DNA of 64,000 nt. Origin: Tetramitus jugosus. Lineage: Eukaryota; Protista; Heterolobosea. Below, one piece after another: positions 8,574 through 21,604 of the stretch (position 1 is its first letter; each line of letters starts with the position of its first letter). The stretch spans positions 310,001 through 374,000 of the forward strand of contig OW569384.1 of NCBI GenBank assembly GCA_937625935.1, written 5' to 3'. The position numbers and the translations under genes are program-made. The notes beneath the pieces are model-generated. The model was not told the origin of the DNA, made no database searches, and saw only the letters and a list, made by a program, of their open reading frames with translations.

Positions 8574-9860
8574 ATGGTGATTGTTCGCGAACGATTGTGC
8601 GCAAAAGGAATGAAAGAGAGGCAGGGAATCACAAGTTCCTTGGCGGAGCGTTATTTACTGTCTCCCAGTCTTCATAGGCTGACAAGAATTATTAGTCATC
8701 TTCTCCCCAATGATCCTTCGATTGTGCACTCCGATTTGACTGCTTTTTCCGGTGATGGTGACGGAGAAGCAAAACCGTTACAAAATTTTACGGAATTGTA
8801 TTTTGGAAATTTGTTTTGTTTCGAATTTGCAGGTAATGTGCATCACTTGACAATTGAAAATGCCAATACATACATTGATGATTTTACAGAGGAAGAAAAT
8901 GGCTCATTGCGGAGAAGCTTGTTGAACACAAACAATGATGTTTGCAGATTCACTCAAGTACTGCATCAGCTGGCACTCGCACATGGAATCCACGATCTGA
9001 GGTGCGAAATATATGGCCACATTTGTGCCAACAATCTTGTTGAAAGAATTGACCGGTTTCATTCGATGACTCACGGGGATCATACTCATTCTAATATCGG
9101 TACAGTCTGCTATTATTCTGGTCATGGTCGATCTGCATCTCATGCCGCCTGTGATCAGAATGTTACGAGCAAAGATACTTCATTAGATCTCAGTCTTGCT
9201 AGCAATGTGTTTGATCACAAGAGTGAAGAATTGGTCTCGGTGAATGCCGTTTTATCCAGATTGCGTAGTAAGGGACCTATACTATTGATCTTGGAATGTT
9301 GTCACAGTGGAGCTGCTGTCCTGGATAATATGGGCTCTTTCGATGAAAATAATCCGTACGTTAATGTATTTATATTGTCGAGTTGCAGTGCTGATGAATT
9401 GTCGGGTGCATGGATTATGGATGGCATGGATTCCGGTGCTATCATGACAAAGGTACTCACGGATCCGATAGGGACATATTTTAAGATTGCATATCAAGTG
9501 TTTTATGATTTTGGAGGTAGCTGGTTAACAATGTCCAAGAACAATCAAAGAACATTGTATGAGTTGTATGACCAATATTCAGATATGATCATTGATGAGT
9601 GGCGGTCGAATTATCCCAACTCATTGCATGTTAAAGCTTTCAACTGGTTGCGAGAACATGCTCCTCACATCTTCGTACTGTTCAAGAATTTTCTTTTACT
9701 TGTACGGTATGGCCACAAGTTGCACATGCCACAAGCAGCCGTCAGCTTTCCAGATTTGTCTGCTACGAAGAATAGTCATCATTGGACTGCATTCGAACAA
9801 GTCATGGAAAACTCAATCCTTCAACTATGGGATGATAGATGCAAATCGATACCAGAGTAA
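8574..9860 (+). CDS. Stand-alone Raptor N-terminal (RNC) / caspase-fold protein
   Basis: YYSGHG, ILECCHSG, LSSCSADE, KVLTDPI, LFKNFLL, VSFPDL..HHWTAFE match Raptor-N motifs in order; start codon uncertain. Confidence 0.7.
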   Translation: MVIVRERLCAKGMKERQGITSSLAERYLLSPSLHRLTRIISHLLPNDPSIVHSDLTAFSGDGDGEAKPLQNFTELYFGNLFCFEFAGNVHHLTIENANTYIDDFTEEENGSLRRSLLNTNNDVCRFTQVLHQLALAHGIHDLRCEIYGHICANNLVERIDRFHSMTHGDHTHSNIGTVCYYSGHGRSASHAACDQNVTSKDTSLDLSLASNVFDHKSEELVSVNAVLSRLRSKGPILLILECCHSGAAVLDNMGSFDENNPYVNVFILSSCSADELSGAWIMDGMDSGAIMTKVLTDPIGTYFKIAYQVFYDFGGSWLTMSKNNQRTLYELYDQYSDMIIDEWRSNYPNSLHVKAFNWLREHAPHIFVLFKNFLLLVRYGHKLHMPQAAVSFPDLSATKNSHHWTAFEQVMENSILQLWDDRCKSIPE

Positions 9861-10435: not shown

Positions 10436-13420
10436 TTATTCAAAGTCTGGTGTGGTGGTTGAGAGCAAAGGAGCTGGGTTAGATGAGTTAAAGACGTTGA
10501 TCATCTTTCTAGCACGATCAGCAACATGAGTATCGCTGATACCAAACTTCTTGTACACTTCCTTGTATGGACCAGAAGCACCGAATGTTGTCATTCCGAT
10601 TTGAGAGTGAGAGTACTTGGTCCATCCTTGGACGGAAGAAGCTTCAACGCTCAAAACTGGGACACCAGGAATCAACACAGATCTTCTATATTCCAAGCTT
10701 TGTTGGTCGAACAACTCCCAAGCAGGCATACTGACAACGTTGACCTTGATGTCAGTCAACTTCTTAGCACCATCGATAGCAATAGCGACCTCAGATCCAG
10801 TGGCAATAAAGATAATGTCTGGCTTCTCGAATTCACCATTCTGGAACACAACATAAGCACCCTTCAATGCATCTTGGATAGTAGCACGTTGGAGAAGTGG
10901 CACACCTTGACGAGTCAAGCAAATAGCAGTTGGGGTCTTTGTGGACTCAATAGCAAACTTGTATGCAGCGTTGGTCTCAGTTCCGTCAGCTGGTCTGAAG
11001 ACGACCAAGTTTGGAATAGCTCTCATCAATGGAAGCATTTCGACAGGTTGATGTGTTGGACCATCTTCACCCAAACCAATAGAATCGTGAGTAAAAACAT
11101 AGATCAATGGCAAGTGAGAAAGAGCGCCAAGACGCATTGCACCGAGACCATATCCACCAAAGATCAAGAAGGTTGAAACGTATGGAATCAAACCACCATA
11201 GTATGCCATACCGTTACCGATGGAAATCATGGAATGTTCACGAACACCAAATCTGATGTATCTTCCATCTCTAGACTCTGGTTGGAAGTCCTTGGAGATG
11301 TCCAAGAAGGTCAATGTGGATGGAGTCAAATCTGCAGAACCACCAACCAAATTGCCAATCACTGGAGCAATGGCGTTCAAAACAATTGAAGAGCACTGTC
11401 TGGTAGCCAAATCTGGCTTTTGCTTGGTAAAGTCAGGCAAGCACTTGTCCCAGTTTTCTGGCAACTTTCTGTTGATAAAGTTGCTCAATTGTTGTCCCTT
11501 TTCTGGATTTTCGCTGATCAATGCTTCGAGCGTCTTGTTCCATTGAGCCATCAATTGATTTCCTCTCTCACCAATGCGTTCAAACTCTTGCTTGACTGCT
11601 GGTGGGACAACAAAACTCTCATCAGGATTGAATCCAGAGACTTGCTTCATTGCCTTAACACCTTCAGCACCCAATGGGGATCCATGAACACCGCTGCTGC
11701 CTTGCTTCTTACTGGCATAACCAATGGTGGTTCTAACACAGATCATAGAAGGCTTGTCAGTGACCTTTCTGGCATTGATAATAGCTTGTTTCAATGAGAC
11801 CAAATCAGAGTCACCATCCTGAACTCTTTGTACGTCCCATCCAAAACCCTTAAGAACAGTTGGGATATCTTCAGTGAATGCCAAACTGGTACAACCATCA
11901 ATGGTAATATGATTGTCGTCATAAATAACAATCAAGTTTCCAAGCTTGTGATGACCAGCAACGGACAATGCTTCAAGAGCAACACCCTCCATCAAATCAC
12001 CATCACCACAGAATGCATAAATAAAGTTATCAACAACCTTGTTGTTTTCAGTGTTAAAGCGAGCGGCAAGGTGTTGAGAAGCCATAGCCATACCGACACA
12101 GTTGGTAATACCTTGACCGAGAGGTCCAGTGGTGGCATCAATTCCATCAGTCCATCCATATTCTGGATGACCAGGTGTGTTGGAGTCCAATTGACGGAAA
12201 TTCTTCAAATCGTCCATGGTGACCTTGAATCCAGCAAGATGCAACATCAAGTAATGCAAAGCGCATCCGTGACCGTTACTGAGGACAAATCTGTCTCTGT
12301 TGAACCATTTAGAGTCACTTGTACTGACATTCAAGAAGTACTTCCACAAAACGTAGCCACATGGTGACATACCGATTGGCATACCAGGGTGACCACTGTT
12401 TGCTCTCTCAACGATATCACTGGCCAAGCATCTCATGGTGGCAACAGATGTATGTTGAATAAATGGCTTGATAACTCTTGCAGCAGCCTTGACATCTCTG
12501 TCAGTGGCAGCATGAGCAAGTGCAATGAGCTTGGCATTGGACTCATCACTGACAATGTTCAACAATTGCTTGTACAGAGCATCGTTTTGAGCCAAAGCTT
12601 GGAAAGCTGCCTTGGATGCAGGCAAAAAGTATGTCTTTTCAGATGACTCAACAATGACGTCCTTGGAAGCAATGACTTGAGCCAACTTGATTGCAGCGTC
12701 CTTCTTTGCGCCAGAGACAGCACTATTGACAACAGCAACATCAACAAAGTAGTTCTTGTTTCCATTCTCAGCAGTGAGAATTTGAACATTCAAACCATCA
12801 ATGGTTTGGTTGGCAGCATATTGACTGTAACCGACCAAAACAGCGTCCTTTGTGTTGGCAAAGTACTCCTCAAATGTCTCAATCTCAACAGCATCAATCA
12901 CCTTCTTGTACTTTGCAATAAAGTCCTTTGAAACTTCAGCAGCAGAGGTTGGAAGACTAGAAACAGAGTCAACATAGTGCATGGCAACATGATAGTCATC
13001 AGCCACTCTTGGATAAACCAATCTCAAGCCCTGTTGATCCAACAAATCGTAAACAGTCTTTACTCCGCTCAAATTGGCGCCAGAAGTAGAAAACAGGAAT
13101 TGAGAGGCCAAATACTGAGGAATACCATAGGATTTTCCGCTCACCTTTCCACTCTCACTGACAAAAGAGAAGATGTCTTCTTGAGAAGCAGTTTGAGAAA
13201 GCTCAGCAACAACTCCTTGTTTCACCAAGTGAGGCAAAAAGAGGGAGTCAACGACAAACACATCAGGATAGGTGGATGATGTGTGATCGTAGCTGTCAAA
13301 GGTGACAAACTCCAAGTTGAACTCTCCAGAAACAGCAGTTTGGAAGTGCTTGATAATGGATTGTTTTTGTTGGCAGGAGTTGATTGTAGGGAAGAGACCC
13401 ACAGTGATCGTGTTACTCAT
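10436..13420 (-). CDS. Thiaminase I-like domain - transketolase fusion
   Basis: ATG 13420 (MSNTITVGLFP); N-terminal ~320 aa thiaminase-like (PDVFVVDSLFL, YGIPQYL, GYS, YFVD); C-terminal transketolase (ANSGHPG, NRDRFVLSNGH, GDGDLMEG..DDN, FGVREH, THDSIGLGEDGPTHQP). Confidence 0.92.
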   Translation of the reverse strand: MSNTITVGLFPTINSCQQKQSIIKHFQTAVSGEFNLEFVTFDSYDHTSSTYPDVFVVDSLFLPHLVKQGVVAELSQTASQEDIFSFVSESGKVSGKSYGIPQYLASQFLFSTSGANLSGVKTVYDLLDQQGLRLVYPRVADDYHVAMHYVDSVSSLPTSAAEVSKDFIAKYKKVIDAVEIETFEEYFANTKDAVLVGYSQYAANQTIDGLNVQILTAENGNKNYFVDVAVVNSAVSGAKKDAAIKLAQVIASKDVIVESSEKTYFLPASKAAFQALAQNDALYKQLLNIVSDESNAKLIALAHAATDRDVKAAARVIKPFIQHTSVATMRCLASDIVERANSGHPGMPIGMSPCGYVLWKYFLNVSTSDSKWFNRDRFVLSNGHGCALHYLMLHLAGFKVTMDDLKNFRQLDSNTPGHPEYGWTDGIDATTGPLGQGITNCVGMAMASQHLAARFNTENNKVVDNFIYAFCGDGDLMEGVALEALSVAGHHKLGNLIVIYDDNHITIDGCTSLAFTEDIPTVLKGFGWDVQRVQDGDSDLVSLKQAIINARKVTDKPSMICVRTTIGYASKKQGSSGVHGSPLGAEGVKAMKQVSGFNPDESFVVPPAVKQEFERIGERGNQLMAQWNKTLEALISENPEKGQQLSNFINRKLPENWDKCLPDFTKQKPDLATRQCSSIVLNAIAPVIGNLVGGSADLTPSTLTFLDISKDFQPESRDGRYIRFGVREHSMISIGNGMAYYGGLIPYVSTFLIFGGYGLGAMRLGALSHLPLIYVFTHDSIGLGEDGPTHQPVEMLPLMRAIPNLVVFRPADGTETNAAYKFAIESTKTPTAICLTRQGVPLLQRATIQDALKGAYVVFQNGEFEKPDIIFIATGSEVAIAIDGAKKLTDIKVNVVSMPAWELFDQQSLEYRRSVLIPGVPVLSVEASSVQGWTKYSHSQIGMTTFGASGPYKEVYKKFGISDTHVADRARKMINVFNSSNPAPLLSTTTPDFE

Positions 13421-13845
13421 GGTGATGGTGGTGGAAGTGAAGTGTGTTTTTGTTTTTTTGGGTGGTGATGTATGTAATGGGTGGCCGCCACTAATTTTTT
13501 TGTGCACTGGGTGTTTTGGAGAGATCACAACGGGTGAATCTCCGTTGATCGAGATCGGGTTTTTTGTCCACTGGTGAAAAAAACTACAGCAGCAGCAGAT
13601 AAGAGCCAATAAAGCCAATCTAAAGCTCCCATCTCATAGGTGCAAGTGATTTGATACACAATGTTTATTATGCAAAGAATGACGTGCGCATGATGTTGCT
13701 CCGCGGTTGTTGCGATATTTCTGCGAAAATTCTTGGTTGTGTCACGTCATGTGAAATAATTCTCTTGTTGGATGGACAAGGAAAGTCTACAGGAAATTGT
13801 CCAGATGCCATGGTGTTGGTTGTGTATGTATCTCAATATTTAAAT

Positions 13846-15351
13846 TTATTTGATAGTTCCGGCGACGTCATCCTTGTCAACCTGCTTAATAGTGATCTTA
13901 AAGTATTGCTCAAATTGCCTGATGATGTTCAAATCTTGAGGACCAGCACACAAGTTGATTGCAGTACCTGATCGACCGAAACGTGCCGTACGACCAATAC
14001 GATGCAAATACGAAGAGAAGTCACCTTGAGCAGTTGCACCACCGTTCATTGGTCCATTACGCGTTTGTCGCACAAAAACAACAGGCAAATCAAAGTTCAC
14101 AACGTGTGTCACCGTTGAGATATCGAGACCTCTGGCCAACACATTTGTTGAAATCAAGACCTTTGAGTTACCCACCTTGAATTCAGTAATGGTCTTCTTT
14201 CTCTCCTCGGGCAACAAACCAGAGTGGAGCATAGAAACCTTGAATCCGTCGTTTCTCAATCTGTTACACAAAATGGTGGCAGCATCCTTTCTGTTCATGA
14301 AGATGATCGTTTGACCAACTTCCAATTCTGTAAACATATCTTGCAGGACTCTTTCCTTTCCTTCATCATTTCCACAGTCGACATAGTACTGTTTCATGTT
14401 GGACAATGTCAATTCTTCCTTTGGGACGAGAATCATCTTCAGTGGTTGTGGAACAATGCTCTTTGCAAATTCGAGCACTTGAGCTTCTCTGTCTTGTTGT
14501 TCCTTGGCTTCCTCTCCAGTCAACATTTCATCCTCGGCATAGGTGGCAGAGAACAGGACGACACGAGCCGTCTTTGGTAGAGCTCTCTGGATTAGCTTAC
14601 ATTGGTCAAACATGATATTGTTACTTTCCTTTTCAAGCATTTGATCGGCTTCATCAATCACAAACATGCTCACATTTCTTGTGTCAATCAATCTCCTTTT
14701 CACCAAGTCAGAAAGTTTTCCAGGTGTTCCTACGACAACGTGTTCAGTAATTCTAGATTTGATGGTATCACCCTTCAGTGTAGCCTTCACAGTAATCTGT
14801 GTAAACTTTGTTAATTTTAGGAGAACGTTGCAGATTTGATCAGCCAACTCCAATGAAGGAGCAACGACAATGGCTTGTACTACAGGCTTTGTTTCATCAA
14901 TGTGTTGCAGAGTACCGAGACCAAAGGTGGCAGTCTTACCAGTACCACTCTGTGACTGTGCAATCAAATTCATATTCTTCTCTTCAATTAAAATAGGAAG
15001 TGCTCTTGATTGAATCTTGGATGGCATGTTATACTTGAGAGCGTACACTCCCTGGAGCAAGTTCTCCTTTAGACCAAACTCCTCAAACTTTTTCTTTTCA
15101 CTAAACAGTGGATTGTTGACGTCCAATTGTTGTGCTTCTAGGTTGACACCAGTTGCAGCAACAAATTCCTCTGCTAGAGGTGCTGATGTTGTGGTGACTG
15201 CTGTTGTTGCTGGTGATGTGGTGGTTGTTTGTAAAGGTGTGGCAGTAGTGGTAGCTACTGTAGAATCACCTTCTTCCTCCAGGTCGGCCCATGATTTTTT
15301 GGCAGTGTTGAGGCTCATGCTCTGGAGCTTATCTTCGACTGATTGAGACAT
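13846..15351 (-). CDS. DBP5: DEAD-box RNA helicase DBP5/DDX19 (mRNA export)
   Basis: AQSQSGTGKT, DEADQML, FSAT, TNVLARGLD, YLHRIGRTARFGR; NNPLFS..FEE N-terminal motif. Confidence 0.9.
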   Translation of the reverse strand: MSQSVEDKLQSMSLNTAKKSWADLEEEGDSTVATTTATPLQTTTTSPATTAVTTTSAPLAEEFVAATGVNLEAQQLDVNNPLFSEKKKFEEFGLKENLLQGVYALKYNMPSKIQSRALPILIEEKNMNLIAQSQSGTGKTATFGLGTLQHIDETKPVVQAIVVAPSLELADQICNVLLKLTKFTQITVKATLKGDTIKSRITEHVVVGTPGKLSDLVKRRLIDTRNVSMFVIDEADQMLEKESNNIMFDQCKLIQRALPKTARVVLFSATYAEDEMLTGEEAKEQQDREAQVLEFAKSIVPQPLKMILVPKEELTLSNMKQYYVDCGNDEGKERVLQDMFTELEVGQTIIFMNRKDAATILCNRLRNDGFKVSMLHSGLLPEERKKTITEFKVGNSKVLISTNVLARGLDISTVTHVVNFDLPVVFVRQTRNGPMNGGATAQGDFSSYLHRIGRTARFGRSGTAINLCAGPQDLNIIRQFEQYFKITIKQVDKDDVAGTIK

Positions 15352-15638: not shown

Positions 15639-16122
15639 ATGGCTGACGAAATTGAGTAAGTGACAACGTTCATTCTTTGTCAACCACAGCAACAAGAGCT
15701 ACTTTACTCACTCCCAACATTTTTTCTTCACTCTTTGTAGTCATGATAACTATGGAGAAGACGAAGTCGATGATTTCGATGATGATGCACAGGATTTTGA
15801 CACTGAAGTCGTTGCTGACGAGTATGGACAGAGCGACGAGGCAGTGAAGCAACTTGTGGGTCACGATCCAAAGCGTGTTGCTGAAAAAGACAGAAAAACA
15901 ACAAAATTTATGACAAAATTCGAAAAGGCTCGTGTATTGGGAACGAGAGCTCTTCAAATTAGTATGAACGCTCCAGTGATGGTTGAGTTACAAGGTGAGA
16001 CTGATCCTTTGGAAATTGCTAGAAAGGAGTTAACCGCCAGAAAAATTCCAATGATTATTCGAAGATACTTGCCTGATAAGAGTTATGAAGATTGGCATGT
16101 GAATGAACTCATTTTTGATTAA
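15639..16122 (+). CDS. RPB6: RNA polymerase I/II/III shared subunit RPB6; intron 15656-15740
   Basis: [35 protein letters not shown]; GTAAG..TGTAG intron restores frame from ATG 15639. Confidence 0.95.
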
Positions 16123-16367: not shown

Positions 16368-17453
16368 TTATTTTGTAAACAGTGTGGAAGTAATTTGTGA
16401 CCACGACTGAGCAATAAATAGTGTTTTGCTCTCTGTTTGATAATGATTTGTTGATGTGCTTGTTTCTTGTTTCTCTTCCCGTTGTTGACTAGTTTCTGTC
16501 AATTGTTGTTGTATTCGCTGCTTGGCATCTTCAATATTGAGAAGTTGGATATGCAGCTTTTCACAAGCTCTTTGCAGTGAACTTGAGATGCGGCTCGTTT
16601 CTGGATTTGTCAGGATAATGCCAATATGAGCTCTTGTGAGACACAAGAGATCATGCAGTGAATCTCCAACGAAAATGACTGTAGGGCTTGTGCCGTCGTG
16701 CTGTAATTGCTCTTCCTTAACCAGTTCTGATTCCATGCATTGCCACTTTTCTTCACTGGAAACAATTTGAAGCAACTGGAAATTGCCTGTCGATATCATG
16801 TCATCATCTAATTCTAGTTCATTACAATAGACTGGTATCTCATAGGGCATCGCACTCTCTTTATCAGTTGAAACCAGATGATGATTCTTGACGTCCTGCT
16901 TGTTGCTCAATTTGAACTTGAATTGGTTGGCTCTCTCCAATTGATTCATGCAGCTTTCCACAACAGAGTAGCTCCAATTGGCACTCGTTATCGTTATGCT
17001 GGCTTCCCGTGTCAAACACAATGGAACAACCTTTTGAAAGAATACATTCAGATCAGAACGAATACGCTGTTGTTGTCCCAGTTTGTTCAATTGATCTCTT
17101 GAAATGCGGGATAGGCATTTGCGGTCAATCGTATTTCTCACACCATAGTACTCCACCTGAGACAATGGAGAGATGAAATGATAAACTTTGTCGCTTTCTC
17201 GAGCACTGTCCAATTGCTTTTGGAGTGTGTCGTCATACAGATCAAGGTACTGCTTAGAAACTTGTTCCCAGACATCTCTTTTCGAACGTAACAGTGGAAT
17301 CAGAGTACAGACATCATTGAGTGTGCATGTGCTGTCAAAGTCCAAAAAGAATGCCAGCTTTCTTGTCCGGCGTGCCATCATCCTTTGTTTATCAAAGTTT
17401 TGGTTTTTATGAAAAATCTTTCGCGAACCACAATAAATTGATTGGCGTGACAT
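16368..17453 (-). CDS. HAD-family phosphatase, TH2-like thiamin monophosphate phosphatase domain
   Basis: DFDSTCT (motif I), SANW, NEL..ISTG, FVGDSLHDLLCL..AHIGI, SSSLQR; start 17453 or 17381. Confidence 0.7.
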   Translation of the reverse strand: MSRQSIYCGSRKIFHKNQNFDKQRMMARRTRKLAFFLDFDSTCTLNDVCTLIPLLRSKRDVWEQVSKQYLDLYDDTLQKQLDSARESDKVYHFISPLSQVEYYGVRNTIDRKCLSRISRDQLNKLGQQQRIRSDLNVFFQKVVPLCLTREASITITSANWSYSVVESCMNQLERANQFKFKLSNKQDVKNHHLVSTDKESAMPYEIPVYCNELELDDDMISTGNFQLLQIVSSEEKWQCMESELVKEEQLQHDGTSPTVIFVGDSLHDLLCLTRAHIGIILTNPETSRISSSLQRACEKLHIQLLNIEDAKQRIQQQLTETSQQREEKQETSTSTNHYQTESKTLFIAQSWSQITSTLFTK

Positions 17454-17911
17454 GAGTAGCTTAACAACACTCAAAACGACTAAACAATCCGTGTTTTACT
17501 CAATATTGAGATGATTATCAACCAAATATATAATTCAGAATAATTGCTACTACTGATTCTTCTCTGAAGAAACTCTGAACATGATCAACTTGGCTTTTGG
17601 GAAAATGAAGAAAAAAACCCACATTGCAACTGGACGGAAGTGAACTTTCAAAAAATAAGACCAATGGCATTAGAAAAAATTTTAGCTTGCACTGATGAAA
17701 ACACTTTCTACTTATATAGTCTTCTTTTCCCATCTGAAGTTCCAAAACATATCTGTTGACAAACCTATTCAAGACCGAATATGTCTGAGCTTGTCTTTTG
17801 GTCATCATCCACCGAATGTCTTTGGCGCCAAAAACACCATTTCCAGTTTTACGGGATATCACAGCTGGACGCAAAAATCAAATAGCAAACAAAGGAGTCA
17901 AGAGATAAACC

Positions 17912-18541
17912 ATGGGTCTTTTAAGTTTACTTCGAGGTTTGAAGAAGAGCGAAAAGGAAGCTAGAATCCTAATTCTAGGTCTTGATAATTCAGGCAAAAC
18001 AAGTTGCTTGAAAGCTCTAGCAGATGAAGAAATCTCTCAAGTGATGCCAACTCAAGGATTCAATGTCAAGTCTGTTGTAACAAAAGGATTTAAACTCAAT
18101 GTTTGGGATATTGGAGGTCAAAAGTCGATCCGTCCTTACTGGCAAAACTATTTTGAAAATACAGATGCAATGGTATGTCATTCAACATAGAACTGTTCAT
18201 TTCTTAGCATATGTCATCATGACAATGGAAACTTATCGTTGGTCTCTTTCTTTCTATTGTGTGCTTAGATTTATGTAGTTGATAGTGCAGATAGAAAGAG
18301 ACTGGAAGAAACTGCGTTGGAATTGGGTCATTTGTTGGATGAGGATAAACTCGCAGGTGTGCCAGTCATGGTGTTTGCTAACAAGAGTGACTTGCTGAAT
18401 GCTCTATCCGCAGACGAAGTTGCTGAAGAGTTGAACTTGCACATGATTAGAGACCGAGTTTGGCAGATTCAAGCTTGCTCTGCAAAGACTGGAGAAGGAT
18501 TGAACAAGGGTATGGAATGGGTTGTGAAACAACTCCAATAA
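17912..18541 (+). CDS. ARL3: ARF-like GTPase ARL3; intron 18173-18268
   Basis: [44 protein letters not shown]; GT-AG splice joins the frames. Confidence 0.92.
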
Positions 18542-18967
18542 ACTCCACGATTGTACTGTAAACCTCCAAGAGAACCTCGTCTCTACCCAACCCTAAAGAG
18601 GCAAAACTCAACCTGGAGGTGCAATATAAGATACCTGTGAACCATTCTTAACTTCGGCTCCTTTGTTGGGGTGTGATTCTTCGTCCAATGTGATAGTCGA
18701 CACGTACGAATTTGAGGCATCTTCCTCTAGCTTGGAAGTTCACATTTTTCACCAGTTCTGTCAAGGCCTAGTTTGAGCACATGTCCCTACGGACCTCCGG
18801 TGCGCAGTCCGTCCGACGACGGGCAAATAAGATTTTTGTCCCCGGAATTTAACGCAGAATCTGGTTTCACAAAAAGCTCTCAAACTAACCGGTCTGCTGC
18901 GACAATTTAGCTTTATTGCGCATAAACTCTTGCAAAAACACACGTCGACACTCACATCTCGATCATC

Positions 18968-21604
18968 ATGAACATGGAAACAACATCTCCATCACCTCCT
19001 TGTGACACTCTCTCACCGTCATCCATTGACAGCAGTCAAAACACCAGCACACTGTCGACCAACACATCAAAAAACTCGTGCAAACATTGTCGTGAAAGTC
19101 ATCGAAAATGTGATCGAACCTTGCCTCAATGCGTGCAGTGCACCAAGAGAGGCCTTCGATGCATCTATGAACCTTCCAAAAAGCGTCGTTCAAGAGCTGC
19201 CATGGCAGAAGAAGCTGAACAGCAATCACAACATCATCAACAACAACCAGTATTACATCATTCATCATCATCATCATCAGTATCATCGTCTGGCTATGAA
19301 TCATTTGAACAACAAGCGAAAATGGCAAAGCTCTCTCATCCAATCAACAACATCAACACCACCACTGGTGCAACAAATAGTACTGCCGCCAATCATCACT
19401 ATCTGCCGAGTGCAACCATCATGGCACCACCATTTCCACCACCATCTCATCACCATAATCTATCTCATCATCATGAACATCAACATTCTCACCATCATCA
19501 TCATCATAATCAGCAACATCCCAATCATCAATATTTCCAACCACAACTGCTTCAACCAAGTTATCTGTCTCAACAACCACAGATTCTATTGCAACTGTCA
19601 CAACCACAATCACAACCACAGCAACAACAACAACAGCAACAACAACAAGTACCACCACCTCTAGCACCGCCTCAAGCACCATCGTTGCAACAAATGGTGA
19701 GTCATCCTAATTTCAACCTTGAATCCCTAATGAAAATGAGTGGTCAACATCAAGATGCATCAACAACAACAACAACAACAACATCCATTGTGCCCAATGC
19801 TCAATCAACAGTATCACTGCCCTCTCCCTCCACAATATCAGGCTCAGCCATATCAGCCATGTTGGCACCAAACTCTGGTTCTCTCAATGATGTTCTCAAC
19901 TTGTGCTTCCAAATTCTGCCGACAGAGCATCGATCCAGTCTCACTGCACAATTCCTGTGGAGTCAATCGTCCAATCCTCCCAAGAATAAGAATGATGAGA
20001 ATGATGGTATTATCAGTGTCAATAGTGATAGGGAAGCAGAAGAAGAATTGGACAGAAAGGCGGGTGAGGCCATGTGGTTCGCTTCGCAAGCCGTATTGTT
20101 GCAGTACCTACCGTCGAGTGATCCACATCGATTCATTGATTTGGACGCAGAGGAAATGTTCTTTGACAAGATGTGTGAGAAGATTTTCTTGTGTTTCCAA
20201 TTGATTGATCGGAATAACATGAGTGGTGTTAGTGGAGATTCATCTTGTGAACCAAAGTTGGTGAGACCAGCGTCATCATCGTCTATGTCCACTACTGGAA
20301 AGGGTAGTGGGAGTGGACCATATGCTCACTTGATGCGAAAGTTTACAAGAGAACAATTGTTGGACGCTGCACAACAAATGTATCGATTGAGCAAGGAGAT
20401 TCTGTTGGATCCAAAGGTTTTCCCTCATATTTCCAATCATTTCAAGTTTGCTCAATCCTGTTCTTTCCTCGTGTTCTACTTGTTGTCTGTGGGCAATGAA
20501 CAATCGGAGACTCACGTGTTTCTAAAGGCGGTCAAGGTGTTCATGGATCGGGCCAAGGGAATTGTCGAACAGAACAGCAAGATTGTTGTGATGAACGAGT
20601 TTAGCAATGGTCATATCACCAGAAGCAGCAGCAATGGCAACATTAGTACATCCAGTGTGGACAGCAATGAAGAAGCAGAGTATCAATGCTTAGTGCTGGA
20701 TCATATGGCCGATGGGTACTTAGGTCTAAAGGTAACTCTATTTAATGATACAATCGCCTTTAACAAGATATGGATCCGAAAGTTCATCAAGCTCTCATTG
20801 AAGGCACTTGATGCCAGAAAGAATGAAGCTCATTTCGTTCAGGCACTCTCGAGGCATCAAGCAGAAGCCTTGAAGAAATTGAAAAAGCTTCTGTCAGAGA
20901 TTAATGGTACTACACTTGTGCACTGGAACAAGTTTATTAGTACGTGCCGAGAGATACGGTTATCGGTGAAATTCCATGACAAGCATCCACAAACCATCTG
21001 GAATTTCTTTATGCTGTCGTTCGAAATGTATGCATTGCAAGCAGTGTGCGTAGAGGACAATGGTGTCATGCCGAGCTTGCTTAGCACAATGCAAGTGAAC
21101 CTGGCAAACGAAATATCAGAGATTCTCATCGGTAACGTCACTTTGTCGATGGTTGCTGGATCGCGTCTGCGATTGTTTTTGGAGTTTGTCACGAGGGTTC
21201 ATATCGCACATGCTGAAGTGTTGTGTCGTTCGATATCGGCCACTAAGGAGGAAATGGAGGACGCGTTAAAGTACTTACGGATGGATGCATTGATTGTAGA
21301 TGTGATAAGAGGTCGTCACAACAATGCACGGTGTAAAGAGTTGCACAAACTTCTGCACCAACACATGGTTAGGCATACGATGACCATGGGCAGGCAATAT
21401 GATCCAAACTGGCACGATCAAATGGCTCTCGTTATATCAAAGGTGCAGATGGACCAGGAATCCAAACTACTGCCGTCTATTGACAACAAGGCAAACCCGG
21501 TTTTGTCAATACAAGATTCAGATTTCTCAGACCAAGGATTCCTGATGGAGTTGTTCGACATGGATCAGGATTTCCTGTACTTGAATGACCAATACAACAA
21601 TTAA
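18968..21604 (+). CDS. Zn(II)2Cys6 binuclear cluster transcription factor
   Basis: SCKHCRESHRKCDRTLPQCVQCTKRGLRCIY then KKRR; poly-Q/H region. Confidence 0.88.
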   Translation: MNMETTSPSPPCDTLSPSSIDSSQNTSTLSTNTSKNSCKHCRESHRKCDRTLPQCVQCTKRGLRCIYEPSKKRRSRAAMAEEAEQQSQHHQQQPVLHHSSSSSSVSSSGYESFEQQAKMAKLSHPINNINTTTGATNSTAANHHYLPSATIMAPPFPPPSHHHNLSHHHEHQHSHHHHHHNQQHPNHQYFQPQLLQPSYLSQQPQILLQLSQPQSQPQQQQQQQQQQVPPPLAPPQAPSLQQMVSHPNFNLESLMKMSGQHQDASTTTTTTTSIVPNAQSTVSLPSPSTISGSAISAMLAPNSGSLNDVLNLCFQILPTEHRSSLTAQFLWSQSSNPPKNKNDENDGIISVNSDREAEEELDRKAGEAMWFASQAVLLQYLPSSDPHRFIDLDAEEMFFDKMCEKIFLCFQLIDRNNMSGVSGDSSCEPKLVRPASSSSMSTTGKGSGSGPYAHLMRKFTREQLLDAAQQMYRLSKEILLDPKVFPHISNHFKFAQSCSFLVFYLLSVGNEQSETHVFLKAVKVFMDRAKGIVEQNSKIVVMNEFSNGHITRSSSNGNISTSSVDSNEEAEYQCLVLDHMADGYLGLKVTLFNDTIAFNKIWIRKFIKLSLKALDARKNEAHFVQALSRHQAEALKKLKKLLSEINGTTLVHWNKFISTCREIRLSVKFHDKHPQTIWNFFMLSFEMYALQAVCVEDNGVMPSLLSTMQVNLANEISEILIGNVTLSMVAGSRLRLFLEFVTRVHIAHAEVLCRSISATKEEMEDALKYLRMDALIVDVIRGRHNNARCKELHKLLHQHMVRHTMTMGRQYDPNWHDQMALVISKVQMDQESKLLPSIDNKANPVLSIQDSDFSDQGFLMELFDMDQDFLYLNDQYNN

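Follow-up and report, generated by a model that had tools for sequence, protein, structure and literature searches.

What does a thiaminase I domain do when it is joined to an enzyme that depends on thiamin diphosphate (ThDP), and what remains of that purpose once the residues that define its chemistry are gone? The question is raised by one gene in a 64,000-nucleotide stretch of the Tetramitus jugosus contig OW569384.1, the whole of which is referred to here as the window. This gene, identified from the list of open reading frames (ORFs), their translations and Pfam, is a single uninterrupted frame without intron on the minus strand (13420..10436, 994 codons plus stop) in which a thiaminase-I-like domain precedes a transketolase. 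The biological role of thiaminase I has been called a mystery (PMC5627462), and in a full-text search of the literature we found no paper joining thiaminase, Naegleria and transketolase, none on a pseudo-thiaminase, and no explanation for the fusion of thiaminase I to a ThDP-dependent enzyme in Naegleria. As read from its sequence, the gene encodes the organism's sole transketolase carrying an N-terminal pseudo-thiaminase I, a naturally inactivated and conserved derivative of the heterolobosean thiaminase I–transketolase fusion.

Loss of the catalytic pair

The thiaminase-I-like domain, which has the type II periplasmic-binding-protein fold, spans residues 1–323 (12452..13420, minus strand) as delimited by alignments with 4hcw, 4kys and 2thi and by an AlphaFold2 (AF2) model. 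In the minus-strand translation (SYGIPQYLASQF) the column of the nucleophilic Cys (Cys113 in the Paenibacillus enzyme) is occupied by Ala105 (codon GCC, 13108–13106), and in the segment VLVGYSQYA the column of the activating Glu (Glu241) is occupied by Gln200 (codon CAA, 12823–12821), so that translation and alignment together confirm the YGIPQYLAS and GYSQ readings on which the first-pass annotation had built its case. The alignment is clear in both regions: in phmmer comparisons with chains of the PDB, the query 'gipqylAsqfl' faces 'gfpqylCsnfl' of 4hcw and 'glpqiLCtnll' of 2thi and 3thi, and 'vgysQ' faces 'vgysE' of 4hcw and 'igysE' of 2thi. Both residues are lost in every member of an environmental clade of five such fusions. 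In a family alignment of 120 sequences, these five have A, A, S, S and S at the nucleophile position, where 113 of the 115 others have Cys, and the Glu column holds Gln in all five and Glu in 113 of the 115 others. At the codon level, the series TGT (N. fowleri), TCT (P0154) and GCC (window and P0001) can be read as single-base steps, and the Glu column passes from GAG to CAA or CAG.

An alternative Cys nucleophile was sought and rejected, leaving the pseudoenzyme claim standing: the domain's only Cys (Cys16) is not conserved, no position in the N-terminal domains of the clade holds a conserved Cys, and P0002 lacks Cys throughout this domain. Four runs, each from a different study (one soil metatranscriptome library, one groundwater metagenome and two runs labelled by organism), yielded contigs that span 12452–13420 in one piece; their sole departures from the window lie at 13084, 13174, 13184, 13214 and 13286, with three synonymous and two conservative changes (S113A and I83V). 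Since both catalytic codons are unchanged in these contigs, which keep GCC rather than TGC at 13106–13108, the loss is not refuted by the reads.

With the loss of both the nucleophilic Cys, whose target is C6′ of the thiamin pyrimidine, and the activating Glu, the covalent base-exchange reaction of thiaminase I cannot run, and by sequence it is shown to be impossible for the window domain. A similar pair of changes, C148A/E269A, leaves the myxobacterial thiaminase I CcThi1 inactive (PMC10499793). The proposal that the domain is catalytically dead is thus borne out by the clear alignment, the lack of another conserved Cys, the clade-wide losses, the CcThi1 precedent and, as described below, an intact fold and purifying selection. 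Because its two defining residues are absent, the window domain is not a thiaminase I in the enzymatic sense; it belongs to the family by fold and fusion architecture.

The transketolase half (10436..12451, minus strand) is complete as judged by TIGR00232 (820.3 bits against a cut-off of 682.25) and by alignment with 5hje (E 1.6e-209), and the Pfam models Transketolase_N, Transket_pyr and Transketolase_C_1 cover residues 322–961. It retains SGHPG, SNGH, TPGHPE, GDG..EG, DDN, VHG and ATR, together with SADLTPS, VREH, THDSIGLGEDGPTHQP and LTRQ, motifs that in transketolases bind ThDP and metal and supply the catalytic His, Arg, Glu and Asp residues. The GDG..N motif attributed earlier to this half is indeed present, as FCGDGDLMEG...YDDNH. 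Across the 26.35-Mb assembly the one transketolase locus and the one thiaminase-like locus are the same gene, with no second thiaminase I or second transketolase found.

Fold, descent and selection

Compared with PDB chains by phmmer, residues 1–323 match 4hcw from N. gruberi (E 8.9e-31), 4kys from Clostridium botulinum (1.3e-22) and 2thi from Paenibacillus (1.4e-17), the 2thi, 3thi and 4thi chains of the last enzyme all matching at E ~1e-17. The window domain scores 97.3 bits with TIGR04541 (dead domains range over 89–105 bits), under the cut-off of 175; the active N. fowleri domain is also under it, at 74.8 bits, and the cut-off therefore fails to separate active from dead eukaryotic members. 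Neither of the Pfam thiaminase models, PF22156 and PF22141, matches the window domain, for which Pfam offers only a weak SBP_bac_1 match, and a search of a language-model atlas returned only thiamine pyridinylase and generic solute-binding clusters. The AF2 model of the domain was built on a 102-sequence alignment and reached a predicted local distance difference test score (pLDDT) of 94.4 and a predicted template-modelling score (pTM) of 0.92, compared with an unusable pLDDT of 38 when only 4 sequences were aligned. It superposes on 4hcw, 4kys and 3thi with Z of 33.7, 33.6 and 33.2, respectively, and a root-mean-square deviation of 2.2 Å over 311–314 residues. The next structural matches are sugar-binding proteins with Z of 25 or lower, to which phmmer against the PDB chains detected no sequence similarity beyond the fold.

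Against this background the loss is narrow. Eight columns are conserved in at least 90% of bacterial members, and while the active N. fowleri domain keeps all eight, the window domain keeps six, losing only the Cys and the Glu. Each keeps 18 of the 28 columns conserved in at least 75%, and at a threshold of at least 60% (65 columns) the window domain keeps 34 and the N. fowleri domain 33, so that by sequence the overall divergence of the window domain is no greater than that of its active counterpart. Four further residues, matched in the 2thi alignment to Paenibacillus numbering, are invariant across the five clade members: Tyr44 (13289..13291, equivalent to Tyr50, which is Tyr in 93% of the family), Asp58 (13247..13249, Asp64, Asp in 97%), Tyr198 (12827..12829, Tyr239) and Asp227 in the YSDV motif (12740..12742, Asp272, Asp in 90%), all on the minus strand. 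An Asp272 was reportedly proposed as the catalytic base of the N. gruberi enzyme by Kreinbring et al. in 2014.

Relatives of the domain were gathered in two ways. A word-index search with the full protein recovered the fusions P0001–P0003, with N-domain identities of 55–59%, and was uninformative for isolated domains, the window domain finding nothing and the N. fowleri domain only itself. An exhaustive profile search over 1.84 billion representatives added the fragment P0005, the Naegleria-type P0006 and ~200 mostly bacterial thiaminase I relatives. P0006 is a 1020-residue N. fowleri protein in which a PQYLC/GYSE thiaminase I domain is followed by transketolase, and its N. lovaniensis ortholog is 91–97% identical. 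In a quick, midpoint-rooted maximum-likelihood tree the dead clade is supported at 99 by the Shimodaira–Hasegawa-like approximate likelihood-ratio test (SH-aLRT), and it joins the Naegleria pair and two long-branched sequences at 96. The latter, P0036 (342 residues) and P0064 (304 residues), are very long-branched thiaminase-I-like proteins that stand beside the heterolobosean fusion domains; neither has lost the Cys or the Glu, and they might represent eukaryotic relatives that occur unfused.

Dead and active types have the same junction, reading ...IKPFIQH/TSVATMRCLA... in the window (12437..12466, minus strand, the slash marking the boundary; from an alignment of six fusions and the AF2 model) and ...LRPYLQH/IAVATLRCLT... 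in N. fowleri. The final helix of the N domain (307–322 in the AF2 model) continues directly into the first transketolase helix, and the match to 5hje begins at the second residue past the junction. The domain had first been drawn as 12460–13420, of which the start at 13420 was right, whereas the end, at residue 323 (12452), lies slightly further on. A junction conserved and linker-less in both types points to one ancient fusion and a fixed arrangement of the domains. Shared descent of the window domain with the Naegleria fusion is shown at the level of sequence, with ortholog or old paralog both fitting.

The fusions of Naegleria (4hcw/4hcy of N. gruberi, N. fowleri CAG4713849 and N. lovaniensis XP_044555404) resemble the window gene in their two-part layout, in a linker-less junction motif (K/R-P-aromatic-I/L-Q-H, then the first transketolase helix) and in fold, with Z of 33.7. 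That N. gruberi has such a fusion had been taken as established; the fusion is seen in N. fowleri and N. lovaniensis, and for N. gruberi it is implied by the 4hcw chain, which stops exactly at the junction. The differences are that the Naegleria domain reads PQYLC and GYSE where the window domain reads PQYLA and GYSQ, the N. gruberi domain being a proven enzyme; that the window protein and N. fowleri P0006 are 29–31% identical in the N domain and 57% in transketolase; and that PF22156 matches the Naegleria domain and not that of the window, whose gene neighbours also differ from those in N. fowleri. With the secreted thiaminase I of bacteria (thiamine pyridinylase, EC 2.5.1.2; TIGR04541; 2thi, 3thi, 4kys) the window domain is homologous throughout (fold Z 33), and the equivalents of Tyr50, Asp64, Tyr239 and Asp272 are present in both. 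Unlike these enzymes, the window protein has no signal peptide, is fused to transketolase, scores 97 bits against the family cut-off of 175, and lacks the nucleophilic Cys (Cys113 or Cys143, depending on the enzyme) and the activating Glu (Glu241 or Glu271).

The domain has been maintained since its catalytic residues were lost. For the closest pair of clade members with DNA, P0154 and P0005, synonymous divergence (dS) is 0.23 and nonsynonymous divergence (dN) 0.066, giving a dN/dS of 0.29; deeper pairs have proportions of nonsynonymous differences (pN) of 0.24–0.35 against synonymous ones (pS) of 0.66–0.81, with synonymous sites saturated. The four full-length orthologs contain zero frame breaks, and on these comparisons the window domain is held by purifying selection. 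Retention of the fusion under such selection without the catalytic residues suggests that the domain aids transketolase independently of thiamin cleavage. The last ~5 residues of P0005 (locus L019) diverge from those of its close relative P0002 and are followed by a stop just where the 1286-base contig itself ends, probably an artefact of the contig end and not a truncated gene.

What the cleft may still bind

As only the two catalytic residues are lost and the rest is well preserved, the domain probably continues to hold a thiamin-like molecule while leaving it uncut. The fuller proposition, that the cleft binds an aminopyrimidine of the thiamin family uncleaved and thereby serves the attached ThDP enzyme, we hold to be evenly poised. 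The cleft would bind thiamin, its monophosphate (ThMP) or ThDP, hydroxymethylpyrimidine (HMP) or an analogue without cleavage, in the manner of the C143S enzyme in 4kys. This C. botulinum thiaminase I, titled a thiamin complex, has Ser in the nucleophile column and is thus Cys-less like the window domain, which makes it the obvious model for what the dead domain may do. In this engineered enzyme, however, a single residue was altered and the Glu and complete thiazole-side pocket remain, whereas the window domain has also changed the Glu and several cleft residues. Sikowitz et al. are said to have reported in 2013 that the thiamin in 4kys is uncleaved and the C143S mutant inactive.

A bound ligand would most likely serve the transketolase, through capture or holding of cofactor or precursor or as a report of vitamin status, because the conserved linker-less junction holds the domain next to the ThDP-binding domain. 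It would do so in an organism that seems to lack de novo synthesis of the pyrimidine and thiazole and to live on salvage. The genome contains a thiamin pyrophosphokinase (TPK), a ThiE-like and an adjoining TenA-like gene and one NMT1-like match; ThiC is absent from it, and a Thi4 search yielded only dinucleotide-binding-motif matches. With salvage genes only, no ThiC and no real Thi4, the organism looks dependent on external thiamin or thiamin halves. The role of sensor, store or delivery module suggested for the domain at first pass fits the kept pyrimidine-side residues. That the domain is a working intramolecular receptor for thiamin/ThDP (or HMP), loading, holding or sensing the cofactor for transketolase, is a tentative idea that we think has somewhat the worse of the argument. 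Binding without cleavage is found in the same fold class, which the window domain shares with the periplasmic thiamin-binding protein TbpA/ThiB, which is described as structurally related to thiaminase I but as leaving the thiamin it binds whole (PMC5627462). TbpA has no detectable sequence match to the window domain and is not among its 50 best structural matches; the domain is derived from a thiaminase and not from TbpA.

Several observations weigh against a thiamin-binding role. The N domain evolves 2–4x faster than the transketolase half, identities within the clade being 47–61% for the former and 73–88% for the latter. Several residues that active enzymes conserve are replaced clade-wide, the Tyr18 equivalent having become Thr or Ser, the Tyr270 equivalent Phe, Pro at position 14 Asn, His or Asp, and Trp at position 27 Gln or His, and these replacements are concentrated in the first strand-loop-helix of the domain. 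The pocket is therefore altered, with remodelled residues on the side of the cleft away from the pyrimidine, and the ligand could be other than thiamin, or none. Binding of the thiamin family is something we infer only from the kept cleft residues and the 4kys precedent, and the domain could have been retained because folding or assembly of transketolase has come to depend structurally on a rigid fused neighbour. The runs labelled as RNA carry long contigs and may contain DNA, so that they give no proof of transcription.

The last of these thoughts on retention leads to the best-surviving rival, a structural relic that has lost catalysis and ligand binding alike and is kept for folding, stability or oligomer assembly. 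The conserved, linker-less junction, the faster evolution of the N domain and the remodelling of one side of the cleft would all follow naturally from it, but a purely structural role would not pick out the near-invariant cleft residues, which apart from the catalytic pair are all kept in five lineages, and we regard a relic as unlikely. Less probable again is a re-targeted module whose cleft binds another metabolite, such as a sugar phosphate of the pentose phosphate pathway, with an allosteric effect on transketolase. Its appeal lies in the general solute-binding fold, in which sugar-binding proteins score Z of 23–25, and in the clade-specific replacements at positions 12, 14, 27, 112, 115 and 269; yet Asp64, Tyr50, Tyr239 and Asp272 are characteristic of thiaminase I and their equivalents do not vary among the clade members, and sequence similarity to sugar binders is limited to the fold.

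The domain might also still be an enzyme that cleaves or modifies thiamin or an analogue through different chemistry, for instance with water activated by Asp227 or with a Ser nucleophile, given that Asp227 is kept and that Ser stands in place of the Cys in three of the clade members. We consider this highly improbable: the column holds Ala in two members, the window included, and so is not maintained for a nucleophile, the P0002 domain has no Cys, the C. botulinum enzyme with Ser at this position has been crystallised in complex with thiamin (4kys), and CcThi1 has no activity once both residues are changed to Ala (PMC10499793). A sequencing or assembly error hiding true Cys and Glu codons is rejected as having next to no chance, since contigs of four independent runs, from as many studies, carry the same letters at both codons and four related sequences from other samples have the same losses.

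Gene setting and wider meaning

The start codon at 13420 lines up with the start of the ortholog P0002, and the frame, which stays open upstream to 13618, has no similarity there to the upstream extension called for P0001. The contigs of all four runs stop 2 to ~60 bases upstream of the start codon (13420–13480), beside an A-rich, CCA-repeat stretch; their ends may reflect the 5′ end of a transcript or an assembly break at low-complexity sequence. The window sequence occurs in libraries from soil, sediment and groundwater.

A DEAD-box helicase (13846–15351, minus strand) and Rpb6 (15844–16122, plus strand) adjoin the fusion gene, and the same two neighbours accompany P0001 on its contig (locus L003, 1070–3658), so that members of the dead clade share this arrangement of three genes; the N. 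fowleri locus lacks these neighbours. Beyond them a 368-residue ORF (16371–17474, minus strand) has no Pfam match with an E of 0.01 or lower, leaving unsupported the idea of a TH2-like ThMP phosphatase or a thiamin micro-cluster. Just downstream of the transketolase gene a 428-residue ORF (8574–9860, plus strand) weakly matches a caspase domain (Peptidase_C14, 36 bits), in agreement with a metacaspase-like identity. Elsewhere in the genome, on contig C3, the ThiE-like domain (TMP-TENI, 194 bits, in a 525-residue frame; 17654–18220, minus strand, locus L007) and the TenA-like domain (106 bits, in a 520-residue frame; 18483–19031, plus strand, locus L018) lie head to head ~260 bases apart, and may be a divergently transcribed pair of thiamin-salvage genes.

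For the family as a whole, the clade amounts to a natural experiment, in which a sister lineage has dropped the two catalytic residues and yet retains, on the one transketolase it has, the fusion, the fold and the binding-type residues. It would add a clear example to the pseudoenzymes that descend from enzymes of vitamin degradation, and it advises caution against annotating such protist proteins as active thiaminases. If the domain is indeed a receptor, the ancient purpose of the heterolobosean fusion would have been the handling of a cofactor and not the destruction of a vitamin, and the fusion would offer an experimental handle on the long-unexplained role of thiaminase I.

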